NCBI GenBank assembly: GCA_026770705.1
Contig: JANJGN010000071.1
Span: forward strand, 620,001-684,000
Direction of reading: 5' to 3'
Origin: Isurus oxyrinchus
Lineage: Eukaryota
DNA: 64,000 nt
Within the stretch, counting starts at the first letter, position 1; each line of letters begins with the position of its first letter. The notes beneath the pieces were generated by a model. That model made no database searches. It was not told the origin of the DNA and saw only the letters and a list, made by a program, of their open reading frames with translations. The translations under genes and the position numbers were made by a program. Positions 22,080 through 26,494 of this stretch are shown one piece after another.

Positions 22080-22196
22080 CTAATATCTACAGCAGATACC
22101 ACAAGTCTCATTTGGTTCTCTCCAATTACAGCAGTGACAGCAGAATCTGCAGGGCCGCTGTCTGCTCATTCTCTTCTGGCGCTGCAGCAAGGAGCC
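22080..22196 (-). CDS. HAMP: Hepcidin exon 3 (furin site + mature 8-Cys peptide)
   Basis: cttttccag|GGC TCC ... CGC CAG AAG AGA ATG AGC ... TGC TGT AGA TAT TAG. Confidence 0.95.
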   Translation of the reverse strand, partial: GSLLQRQKRMSRQRPCRFCCHCCNWREPNETCGICCRY

Positions 22197-23627
22197 CTGG
22201 AAAAGCAGGAGGACAATAGGTGAGAACATTCCGGAAAGAAAGAAGGCATCATTTCAATCAGGCGCGTCATTGGAAGGAGGATGGCGCATTTCTATAGCGC
22301 CTTTCCCCTCCTCAGGATGGCCCAAAGTGTTCCACAGCTGAAGGAAGGACTTTTTCTGAAGTGAGCTCACCGCTGTAATGTAGGAAACGCAGCAGGCAAT
22401 TCACGCACAGCAAGATCCCACAAACAGAAATGTGATAATGGCCCCGATTTTCAGTTTTTTACCAATGTCAGTTGAGGGATAAATGTTTGCCCCAGGAAAG
22501 CGGACATAACTCCACCCCATCCACTCCCCACCACCCCCTCCACACATACCCCCAACTCCTGACGCACTTCATCTAAATTGTGGCCATGGAATCCTCTACA
22601 TCCATCTGAGAGGGCAGATGTTGTCTCAGTTTAACATCTCATCTGAAAGACAGCGCCTTCAACAGTGCAGCACCCCCTCAGTACTGACCCTCCGACTGTG
22701 CAGCACTCCCTCAGTACTGACCGTCTGACAATGCAGCACCCCCTCAGTACTGACCCTCCAACAGTGCAGCACTCCCTCAGTACTGACCGTCTGACAATGC
22801 AGCACCCCCTCAGTACTGACCCTCCGACTGTGCAGTCCCCCGCCGGTACTGACCCTCTGACAGTGCAGCACTCCAAGACTGACCGTCTGACAATGCAGCA
22901 CCCCCTCAGTACTGACCCTCCGACTGTCCTGCACCCCCGCCGGTACTGACCCTCCGACAGCTCGGTAATTTCTCAATTATGCCTGGTGGTCCTTTTAACT
23001 CAGAGCTGAGAGTTGCAGAGAATCGAGCACACATCCTGAACTGACACTTGCAGTGCAAGTACTGGGAGCGTGCTGGTCATTTTCATGCTGCTGTCTGTGG
23101 GATCTTACTGTGCGCCAATGGCTGATTCTTTTCCCACAGTACATCAGCGACCTCACATGAAAGAAAAAAAGCACTTGATTGTCTGCGAAACACTTTGGGA
23201 CGTCCTGATGTGTTGGAAGGCGCTAGAGAAATGCAAAGTCCTCTTTGTCTTTCACTCGATCCTCTAAGGTGTCTGTTGATTAACCAGCCACTCGGTGTTT
23301 GATGTAGGCCTGGTTATAAACAGTTAGAAGGATCAAATATCAAAAGTGCTTTGGCTGACAGTCAAACCGATTGTGCATTCGGAGAGATTAGATATGGTCT
23401 GCACACAATGACTCCAGTCTCTGGCACTGACTGCCGCCTGGGGTCTCCCTTCCACATAACACTCACAACTTGCATTTACACAGCGCCTCTGACATTGCAA
23501 AATGTCCCAGCCCACATTACCGGAGCGTAAATCAGAGAGAAGTCTAACACTGAGTCACATCTGGAGATATTAGGGTTAGGTGACCAAAAGCTTGGTCAAA
23601 GATGTCAGTTTTTAAGGAGCGTCTTAA

Positions 23628-23658
<31 letters not shown>

Positions 23659-26494
23659 GCAGAGAGGTTAAGGGAGGGTATTCCGGAGCTCAGGGCCCCA
23701 GGCAGCTGAAGGCACGGCCACCAATGGTGGAGCGATGGGAATCAGGGGGTCCCGGGAGATGCAGTAATGTCAGAGATTTTGGAGGAACATCGGGACCGGA
23801 GGAGGTGTTCTCCTGCTCCATATCTCTCTCTCTCTTCCTCTCATCCACTCCTCCTCTCCCTGTCTCTCTCTCTCCTACTCTTCCTCTCAATTGCCCTCTC
23901 TCCCAATCTTTCTCTCCTCTCTCCCTTTTCCTGTCTCTCTCCCTCTCTCTCCCCTGTCTCCTTCTCCCACTCTGTATCTCTCCCTCTCTCTCACACTATT
24001 TTTGTACCTTTCGCTCACTCTGTAACTCTCCCTTTCCTGTTAATTTCTCTCTCTTGGACAATCTCTCTTCCCTTTTCACTTTCCCTCACTCTGCATCTCT
24101 TCTTTAATTTCTCCCTCTGTCACTCTCTCCCACCTATGTTCTTTCCCTTTCACCCCTCCCCGTCCCACTCTCTGTCTCTCTCTTCCAATCCCTCCCTCCC
24201 CCATTCCATCCCTCTCTCCGACTCTCGAATCCCAGCCTCTCTTTAACCCACTCCCAGGCTGGATCAGTCTCCCTCTCACTATTCCCGGCGTGGGTTACAT
24301 TTAAAATTCCTGTGGGGATATGTTCACTTCCTTGGAATTGTCTCTTCCCAGCTTTGCAAAAAAAGGAGGGGGGGGGGGGGGCTCGATTTCAAACATGCCT
24401 CCTGAGTATAACCGAGACAGACTGCCACTGAAATCAGCTTGAAATCAGAAAACTTTCTGTGGAAGAAACGAGCAGGGAGAAACCTTAAAATAAGGAATGA
24501 ATTTCCACCTACCGTGTCCGGGGAATCCACAGATTTCTCAATCGTCGAAGAACCTAAAGCAGTGTCAACCTGCAAAAAGAAAGAATTTATCAGGGAGAAA
24601 GTGAGAGGAGGATTGAGGGAGAGGGAGAGAGAGAGAGAGAGGTACAGGAGAGAGAGGGGGAGGAGGACAGACTTGCATTTCTCTAACGCCTTTCACCACA
24701 TCCCAAAGCATTTCACAGCCACTGAAGGATGTTTTTGAAGTGCACTCACACTGTAGGAAATGTGGCAGCTGATTTGTGCACAGCAAGATCCCACAAATAG
24801 CAATGTGATCATGGCCTAGATCATCTGTTTTTGGTGATGTTGGGTGAGGGATAAATATTGGTCCCAGGACACCGGGGAGAACACCCCCTGCTCTTCCTCC
24901 AAATAGTGGCTGTGGGATCTTTCACACCCGCCCGAGAGGGCAGACGGGGGACTCGGTTTAATGTCTCATTCAACATTGTTGTGCTCCCTCAGTACTAACC
25001 CTTCGACACAGCAGCACTCCCTCAGTACTAACCCTTCGATAGTGCTGCACTCCCACAGTATTGTCCCTCCGTCAGTGCAGCGCTCCCTCAGTACTGACCC
25101 TCCGACACAGCAGCACTCCCTCAGTACTGACCTCCGACAGTATAGCACTCACCAGTACTGTCCCTCCAATAGTGCAACACTTCCACACTACTGACCCTGT
25201 GACAGTGCAGCACTCCCTCAGCACGGAGTGTTGACCGACGTTATGGGACTGAATTCCCTGGAGTGAGACTCAGACCAGAGATTTAGGTAGGGTTGTTCCG
25301 GCTGGAGGAGGTTACAGAGATAGGGAGGGTTGTAGAGGCTGTAGGAGGTAACAGAGATAGGGAGGGTTCTAGAGGCTGTAGGAGGTGACAGAGATAGGGA
25401 AGGTTGTAGGGGCTGTAGGAGGTTACAGAGATAGGGAGGTGAGTAGGGGCTGTAGGAGGTTAATGAGATGGGGGGGGTTGTGGGGGCTGGAGGAGGTTAC
25501 AGAGGTAAGGAGGGTTGTAGAGGCTGGAGGAGGTTACCAAAATAGATACTGCTGTAGGGGCCACAGTAGGTTACAGAGATAGGGAGAGTTATAGTGTGGA
25601 GAGGACGTTATAGAGTTCATGAGCATTGTAGGGGCTGGAGGAGGTTACAGTGATTCTGAGGGTCGTGGGGCCTGGAGGAGGTTACAGAGATAGGGAGGTT
25701 TGTAGGGTCTGGAGGAGGTTACAGAGATAGGGAGGGTTGTAGGGTCTAGAGGAGGTTACAGTGATCATGAGGGTTGTGGGGCCTGGGGGAGGTTACAGAG
25801 ATAGGGAGGTTTATAGGGGCTGGAGGAGGTTACAGAGATAGGGAGGGTTGTAGGGGCTGGAGGAGGTTACGGAGATAGGGAGTGTTGTAGGGGCTGGAGG
25901 AGGTAACAGAGATAGGGACAGTTGTAGGGGCTGGAGGAAGTTACAGAGATGGGGATTGTTGTAGGGACTGGAGGAGGTTACAGATATAGGGAGGGGTGTA
26001 GGGGCTGGAGGAGGTTACAGAGATAGGGAGGGTTGTAGCGGCTGGAGGAGGTTACAGAGATAGGGAGGGGTGTAGGGGCTGGAGGAGGTTACAGAGATAG
26101 GGAGGGTTGTAGCGGCTGGAGGAGGTTACAGAGATAGGGAGGGTTGTAGGGGCTGGAGGAGTTTACAGAGATAGGGAGGGTTGTACGGGCTGGAGGAGGT
26201 TACAGAGATAAGGAGTGGCTGAGGAGGGATTGAAAACAAGAATGAGAATTTCAGGGGAAACGACAGAAGGAAATGATGTTAAATTCATAGAGGGCGACAA
26301 TATTAAAGGCACAAACATAATAATATCAAACTGCGGAAGTGACCAGTCTATCTGGGTGGTAGATGTAGAGTCATGTGCAAGAAACACCTCACCCAGAGGG
26401 ACATCTCTTAGCTTACCCTCGACAAGGAGAAGAAGTGACTCAGCTGCAGGGAGAGCAGCAAAGTCAGAGTGAACAAGACAAGTCGCCATTTCAT
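22080..26494 (-). CDS. HAMP: Hepcidin-like preproprotein, 3 exons (26494-26417, 24569-24513, 22196-22080), 83 aa
   Basis: MKWRLVLFTLTLLLSLQLSHFFSLSR|VDTALGSSTIEKSVDSPDT|GSLLQRQKR-MSRQRPCRFCCHCCNWREPNETCGICCRY*. Signal peptide, acidic prodomain, RxKR furin site, hepcidin C-xx-CC-x-CC...CGxCC pattern; canonical GT-AG phase-0 introns. Confidence 0.93.
22285..22960 (-). mobile_element. Deu-domain SINE (SacSINE1-like) with 33-bp minisatellite expansion, in HAMP intron 2
   Basis: Minus strand reads GCTGCACTGTTGAAGGCGCTGTCTTTCAGATGAGATGTTAAACTGAG, then TGTGGGATCTTGCTGTGCG; ~9 copies of the 33-mer at 22660-22960. Confidence 0.75.
24513..24569 (-). CDS. HAMP: Hepcidin exon 2 (prodomain, 57 nt)
   Basis: tttctttttgcag|GTT GAC ACT...GAC ACG|gtaggt; phase 0-0. 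Confidence 0.85.
24672..25260 (-). mobile_element. Deu-domain SINE with 33-bp minisatellite, in HAMP intron 1
   Basis: Same SINE body as 22285-22680 and 31385-31655; tandem 33-mers at 24980-25225. Confidence 0.75.
25290..26212 (-). repeat. 37-bp L2-derived minisatellite (~25 copies) in HAMP intron 1
   Basis: (GGGGCTGGAGGAGGTTACAGAGATAGGGAGGGTTGTA)n. Confidence 0.95.
26417..26494 (-). CDS. HAMP: Hepcidin exon 1 coding part (signal peptide)
   Basis: ATG AAA TGG CGA CTT GTC TTG TTC ACT CTG...TCG AGG|gtaagc. Confidence 0.88.

Follow-up and report, generated by a model that had tools for sequence, protein, structure and literature searches.

Hepcidin has its N- and C-termini buried in ferroportin and its variable loop outside, and the hepcidin-binding cysteine of ferroportin has been reported in cartilaginous fish (PMC8235187). 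Teleosts carry, beside the hormone HAMP1, lineage-specific extra copies of the HAMP2 type, which keep the cysteine frame, have lost the hormone N-terminus and play no part in iron regulation (PMC8235187). Hepcidin was among the proteins detected in the nurse-shark plasma proteome, with no whale-shark orthologue (PMC9207270), and catshark proteins named 'hepcidin-2-like' are present in RefSeq/UniRef; shark hepcidin is therefore not undescribed, a point that an earlier note, made from sequence alone, left open. No dedicated study of chondrichthyan hepcidin was found in the literature searched. Here we describe a hepcidin-family gene on the minus strand of a 64,000-nucleotide stretch from Isurus oxyrinchus (assembly GCA_026770705.1, contig JANJGN010000071.1, positions 620,001 to 684,000), referred to below as the window; all coordinates are those of the window.

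By profile score and exon collinearity, the gene is a genuine, intact three-exon member of the hepcidin family. Exon 3 alone matches the Pfam profile PF06446 (Hepcidin) with 29.9 bits against a gathering cut-off of 27 (E 7.2e-7, profile positions 24-52 of 53), and no other family scored on it in the Pfam search, so that the hepcidin (HAMP)-like character proposed in the earlier note was borne out and a better match to a different cysteine-rich family was not seen. In addition, the exons tile annotated 88-aa shark hepcidins (P0003 and P0004) end to end and without gaps. All searches, folds and alignments used single exons; no spliced sequence served as query.

Direct reading of the window shows three exons, all open, in phase 0 and with GT-AG borders, which are in order AGG/GTAAGC, TTTTTGCAG/G, ACG/GTAGGT, and TTTTCCAG/G (the slash marks the border). 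The exons of 78, 57, and 117 nt given in the earlier note (26494-26417, 24569-24513, and 22196-22080) were thus confirmed, except that the first one begins further upstream. A second in-frame ATG is found at 26509 (GCAGAGATGG), 15 nt 5' of the one used previously (26494, TCCCAGATGA). We place the start at 26509 because its Kozak context is better (G at -3 and +4), because no further ATG occurs between it and the 5' end of an RNA contig at 26553, and because the resulting start MGSSQMK is common to the window gene and the annotated shark hepcidins. The precursor most likely comprises 31+19+38 = 88 aa rather than the 83 aa first proposed, and the gap-free tiling of the shark proteins leads to the same start and length; it also shows that an 8-residue loop is normal for 29-residue shark hepcidins. 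The coding part of exon 1 (26417..26509, 31 codons) starts with MGSSQMK, continues with a hydrophobic signal-peptide core and ends with ...SLSR at the donor AGG/GTAAGC. Exon 2 (24513..24569, 57 nt, 19 codons) codes for an acidic pro-region (VDTALGSSTIEKSVDSPDT), and the coding part of exon 3 (22080..22196) spans 117 nt including the TAG stop. Intron 1 (24570..26416, GT..AG, 1847 letters) has a pyrimidine tract leading to its CAG/G acceptor; it contains a 37-bp minisatellite (25284-26215, 25 copies) and a 33-bp array (24984-25221). Intron 2 (22197..24512, GT..AG, 2316 letters) carries SINE-type 33-bp arrays and purine-rich low-complexity sequence. Taken together, the introns hold two 33-bp SINE-type arrays besides the minisatellite, which agrees with the repeat surroundings initially noted. 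Equally correct was the remark that the signal-peptide and mature-peptide frames are off the track of open reading frames (ORFs): both the exon-1 frame and the exon-3 frame (57 codons from stop to stop) are missing from the listed ORFs of at least 70 aa.

The product of exon 1 has a basic start followed by the hydrophobic core and is a putative signal peptide, with 29 of 31 residues identical to an annotated shark hepcidin. In the translation of exon 3, GSLLQ-RQKR precedes a peptide of 29 residues whose eight cysteines follow the pattern C-x2-CC-x-CC-x8-C-x2-CC. The acidic prodomain and the RQKR ahead of the mature peptide, both reported before, were read in exons 2 and 3. RQKR (22170..22181, minus strand) is a predicted furin-type convertase site (R-x-K/R-R) and takes the position of REKR and RQRR in the annotated shark hepcidins. 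Directly behind it, the predicted mature peptide (22083..22169, minus strand) has the N-terminus MSRQRP-C and an 8-residue loop, NWREPNET, with an N-E-T sequon. In the six-frame translation of the window there is a single occurrence of the cysteine pattern, and 0 of 300 block shuffles contain it; all eight cysteines align with those of P0003-P0005 (8/8). Canonical shark proteins score higher on PF06446 than exon 3 of the window (44.8-48.6 bits vs 29.9).

Other searches contributed less. The best match in a sequence search of PDB was bass hepcidin 1S6W, which is weak (E 0.36) and aligns CRFCC..CGxCCR[FY]. A single-sequence AlphaFold2 model has two strands (18-24 and 31-37) at a mean pLDDT of only 66, and Foldseek returned no significant match for it against PDB, the only row being the non-diagnostic arenicin-3 (E 9.4). 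A search of a protein atlas placed a hepcidin cluster second in rank at 0.75, which is a weak lead. The homologue search with the stop-to-stop frame around exon 3 (region 18-57) gave 0 candidates sharing three words, a result of limited meaning as the Logan-derived proteins of runs that do bear the mRNA were likewise missed. The sole match of exon 3 in the representative-protein search, P0001, is a 723-aa translated tandem repeat and was rejected as spurious; a 38-aa query is underpowered against 1.8 billion proteins.

The search with the exon-1 frame retrieved isoforms X2 and X3 of the basking shark (Cetorhinus maximus) 'uncharacterized protein LOC144671611' (NCBI), which are 94% identical over exon 1. 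Isoform X2 (P0003, 88 aa) carries PF06446 and, when used as query, retrieved two catshark (Scyliorhinus canicula) proteins named 'hepcidin-2-like', of which P0004 has 88 aa; the second catshark gene has a 4-residue loop. The window gene shares with P0003 and P0004 the length of 88 aa, the three-block layout, the MGSSQMK start, near-identical signal and pro regions, the dibasic site, the 29-residue mature part, the eight cysteine positions, and the 8-residue loop. Compared to the basking-shark protein, identity is 29/31 in exon 1 and 16/19 in exon 2, and 52/59 (88%) over the pre-pro part as a whole. However, it drops to 13/29 in the mature peptide and to 5/21 for mature residues other than cysteine. 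The canonical hepcidins of basking shark and catshark show the opposite pattern, with 38/59 in the pre-pro part and 26/29 in the mature part, and this is the signature of a constrained hormone.

The differences concern both the N-terminus and the loop. Canonical shark hepcidins start with MSHLS[IV]C, which presumably parallels the human mature N-terminus DTHFPIC, and have a basic loop (N[KR]KG[ST]KKT). The window copy instead has MSRQRP-C, that is RQRP in place of HLS[IV], and thereby lacks the hormone-type segment x-x-H-[FL]-x-[ILV]-C; its loop NWREPNET contains two acidic residues and the sequon. Because the termini are buried in ferroportin and the loop is outside, the lost N-terminus weighs more than the loop. 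Human HAMP and teleost HAMP/HAMP1 have in common with the window gene PF06446, the three-exon structure, furin processing, and the four-disulfide hairpin (the last two predicted for the window), but they retain the N-terminal ferroportin segment and have a loop of 4-5 residues rather than 8. The teleost HAMP2-type copies resemble the window copy as lineage-specific additions with the cysteine frame kept and the hormone N-terminus lost; the nearest solved structure by sequence is bass hepcidin 1S6W. Unlike these teleost copies, the window copy would have arisen independently in the shark. Its cationic character is weaker than that of the canonical sister, not stronger, its longer loop bears a glycosylation sequon, and it lies inside a duplicating Siglec cluster. 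From these comparisons, the window gene is a fast-diverged extra hepcidin copy (paralogue) and probably not a ferroportin ligand, rather than the one cartilaginous-fish hepcidin: canonical MSHLS[IV]C hepcidins exist in sharks, and the window copy keeps 13/29 of the mature residues. Similarity to the canonical gene ends abruptly at the start of the mature peptide, a pattern that would fit a recent duplication followed by fast change as well as a gene conversion affecting the 5' part.

Expression was assessed by aligning Logan contigs from four sequencing runs (X1, X4, X5, and X7), which represent three samples from three studies, with X1 and X4 from one sample and the tissues of the runs coded. 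Both exon joints predicted in the earlier note are found exactly. The joint 22196/24513, which skips 2316 letters, is present in 8 contigs of X1 and 1 of X4, and the joint 24569/26417, which skips 1847 letters, in 9 contigs of X1 and 1 of X4. Both joints read CT..AC on the plus strand, and their sides are short (29 and 38 letters) as the contigs are short. In X1, the contig depths add up to ~150,000-450,000 on the three exons and to ~700-1,200 on the introns; contig depth is no measure of expression level between genes. The fact that contigs are spliced and that depth differs so strongly between exons and introns shows that the run holds RNA. In exon 3, the RNA contigs, which drop rare variants, show no variant letters at 10% or more, and the abundant RNA therefore encodes exactly the mature peptide of the window. 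Among the expressed sister transcripts, exon 3 (117 nt) has 0 variable sites and the adjacent 3' untranslated region (3'UTR) has 5 in 122 nt (one-sided Fisher p=0.033), and this difference suggests that the rewritten mature peptide is under constraint.

More than one locus is expressed, as follows from at least three 3'UTR haplotypes together with a junction variant that ends exon 2 with the codon ATG instead of ACG. One sister transcript departs from the window copy at 21961 (a loose contig end). One X1 contig agrees with the window over the initial 33 nt of exon 3 (GSLLQRQKRMS), leaves the window sequence at 22164 and then continues, in a translation made by hand, with H-L-S-I-C-M-Y-C-C-G. 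This indicates that a canonical, hormone-type sister gene with the same RQKR site is transcribed in the same sample. A minor alternative acceptor in intron 2 is used in 1 X1 contig (exon start 23309, joint 23309/24513); with it, exon 2 would run on into AYIKHRVAG and a stop, and the product would be truncated and lack the mature peptide. For organism B (X5 and X7), coverage is mostly on repeats: X5 has one variant exon 2-3 joint with a 26-letter side, and no exon joints are present in the X7 contigs.

An X4 contig has its 5' end at 26553, and a TATAAG box (26581..26586, minus strand) is located 28-33 nt upstream of it. About 170 nt upstream of the likely transcript start, GGCGCC is followed by AGAC (26719..26728, minus strand), which resembles a BMP-responsive element and may function as such, although a 6-mer of this kind is common by chance. 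The 3'UTR (21828..22079, minus strand) reaches at least to 21828, since an X4 contig spans 21828-22116; within 680 nt in the 3'UTR direction, neither AATAAA nor ATTAAA was found. Contig depth in X1 at 26623-26800, upstream of the TATA box, is ~700 and thus equals that of the introns, which points either to a low DNA background or to some transcription across the locus, through read-through or initiation further upstream.

We consider it fairly probable that the gene codes for an 88-aa prepropeptide of the hepcidin family which, as a diverged paralogue, is not the iron hormone of the shark and has another extracellular role. By homology, the signal peptide from exon 1 would direct the precursor into the secretory pathway; a furin-type convertase would then cut after RQKR and release the 29-residue peptide, which is predicted to form a two-stranded hairpin with four disulfides. 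With signal and pro regions near-identical to the canonical protein, the mature peptide would have been rewritten save for its cysteine frame and would thus have lost the N-terminal segment (x-x-H-[LF]-x-[IV]-C) which hormone-type hepcidins bury in ferroportin. Its role may be in host defence or in another ligand function, as is thought for the teleost HAMP2-type copies, and the gene would belong to a multi-copy family whose members are interspersed among duplicated Siglec-like genes. A wider version of this proposal is tentative, and we rate it as possible rather than probable: sharks would independently have evolved a family of hepcidin-derived peptides that has multiple copies and very high expression and resides in an expanding Siglec cluster, with the pre-pro part kept uniform by recent duplication or gene conversion and the mature part, possibly glycosylated, rewritten for a target other than ferroportin, as a convergent counterpart of teleost HAMP2. 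Several observations speak against the diverged-paralogue proposal. A net charge of ~+2.5, vs +4.5 in canonical shark hepcidin, and a loop with two acidic residues and a sequon give no pointer to a classical cationic antimicrobial peptide. The CxFCC core, including the position equivalent to human F9, is kept, and the long loop is common to canonical shark hepcidin, so that residual binding to ferroportin is possible. The canonical-type transcript is known from a single loose end of 35 letters. Finally, nearly all X1 depth reads G at two 3'UTR positions where the window copy has C (21877) and A (21956), and the contigs from introns and promoter are 1-3% off the window sequence.

The last of these points bears on whether the window copy itself is transcribed. 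Since essentially no X1 depth carries the window letters at 21877 and 21956 and the intron and promoter contigs differ by 1-3%, the probable source of the RNA is either sister copies or another individual. The window copy might then be a silent or redundant, though intact, duplicate, the RNA stemming from its sister copies, which the expression of more than one locus (the 3'UTR haplotypes and the ATG/ACG junction variant) would accommodate. We regard this as less likely than not, given that no damage is seen in the ORF, the four splice sites, the TATA box, or the start context and that 8-9 contigs match the window junction sequences exactly; moreover, the RNA may stem from another individual with different alleles, and contigs drop rare variants. 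Clearly less probable still is a working iron-regulatory hepcidin which continues to bind ferroportin because sharks tolerate another N-terminus. The hepcidin fold signature, the furin site, the CxFCC core, the aromatic C-terminal residue, the resemblance of the promoter GGCGCC-AGAC to the BMP element of HAMP, and the extreme abundance of the RNA would all suit such a hormone; its binding partner already has the relevant cysteine in cartilaginous fish (PMC8235187), and loop length should not matter with the loop outside ferroportin. Yet the N-terminal segment that is conserved from shark (MSHLS[IV]C) to human (DTHFPIC) has been replaced by MSRQRP, the canonical shark hepcidins with their 26/29 conservation across orders imply that the hormone already exists, and one contig indicates that the canonical type is co-expressed. 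That the gene is no hepcidin at all, but an open frame arisen by chance or part of some other cysteine-rich family, has a negligible probability. Its query is short, and single-sequence searches of very large libraries as well as the fold search were uninformative, but the reading is refuted by a Pfam score above the curated cut-off with no competing family, by the cysteine pattern (0/300 shuffles), by exon-for-exon collinearity with annotated hepcidins (exon 1 being 94% identical), and by exact spliced RNA.

The hepcidin gene lies between Siglec-like genes. On its 3' side, a convergent gene (11930..13852, plus strand) consists of a V-set exon (11930-12400), a C2-set exon (12997-13377), and a frame-broken Ig exon (13671-13852); a further V-set exon is found at 8039-8494 on the plus strand. 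On its 5' side, a gene on the same strand as the hepcidin gene (40214..52651, minus strand) has a V-set exon (52184-52651), a C2-set exon (51076-51456), tandem Ig exons (43037-50907) and, at its 3' end, a membrane-region exon (41277-41657) and a tail exon (40214-40612) with LLYANI, an immunoreceptor tyrosine-based inhibitory motif (ITIM), and TEYTQI. We take this succession to recall the tail of mammalian CD33-type Siglecs with an ITIM plus an ITIM-like motif. Pfam assigned V-set and PF24518 (Ig_CD22, the CD22-like first Ig domain) above the cut-off on three exons, in which a YFFR motif was read, C2-set_2 on two exons, and Ig_3/I-set on the tandem exons. The neighbours thus have the domain make-up of Siglecs as judged by sequence, namely a V-set domain with an Arg-bearing YFFR strand, a C2-set domain, and an ITIM tail.

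The flanking C2-set exons (12997-13377 on the plus strand and 51076-51456 on the minus strand) are 98% identical at the protein level and the V-set exons 86%, in inverted orientation, a sign that the surroundings of the hepcidin gene underwent a recent inverted duplication. In the region 43037-50907 (minus strand), one Ig exon is repeated in tandem, with seven full and two partial copies at a spacing of ~1.1 kb, each followed by a TG/CA-rich microsatellite; the full copies are 84-89% identical. A further pair of tail and membrane exons is located at 60444-62101, and its tail exon (60444-60809, minus strand) is 72% identical to that at 40214-40612 (minus strand). A fragment of a LINE-type reverse transcriptase was found at 1522-2994 on the plus strand (RVT_1, 40.7 bits). 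In isoforms X3 and X1 of the basking-shark LOC144671611 (P0002 and P0006), hepcidin exons 1-2 are joined to transposon-derived tails, and the window contains fragments with 86% and 81% identity to these tails at 18941-19051 (minus strand) and 52688-52993 (plus strand). One such tail fragment has the orientation of the hepcidin gene, lies 3 kb downstream of it and comes directly behind a candidate CAG acceptor.

Human HAMP is, as we assume along with the earlier note, directly adjacent to MAG and CD22. Mammalian HAMP is close to Siglec genes in any case, as HAMP and CD22 belong to one interval of human 19q13 (PMC3037298), a region that also includes the FFAR cluster (PMC3037298, PMC4453067), and in teleosts usf2 is linked to hamp (PMC10029227). 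Of the neighbours that might have been expected on the flanks, Siglec-like genes are present on both sides, while USF2, LSR, and FFAR were not recognised in the 64-kb window, where ten more long flanking ORFs gave only the reverse-transcriptase fragment. The Siglec linkage claimed in the earlier note is thus real in the window; the great age attributed to it, which would make the HAMP-Siglec linkage an ancient one, is no more than plausible.

The age of hepcidin is not extended by this gene because hormone-type shark hepcidins are already in public databases, and the hepcidin-binding cysteine of ferroportin had been reported in cartilaginous fish (PMC8235187). What the window copy adds is shark hepcidin of a second kind, which has no annotation in the protein collection searched, whose peptide form is abundantly transcribed and which is embedded in duplicated Siglec genes. 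An old physical linkage between hepcidin and Siglec genes is supported, though without proof. A conserved pre-pro part combined with a rewritten mature part is a pattern typical of fast-evolving defence peptides, and the pair of a canonical and a diverged shark hepcidin raises the question of which residues make hepcidin an iron hormone.

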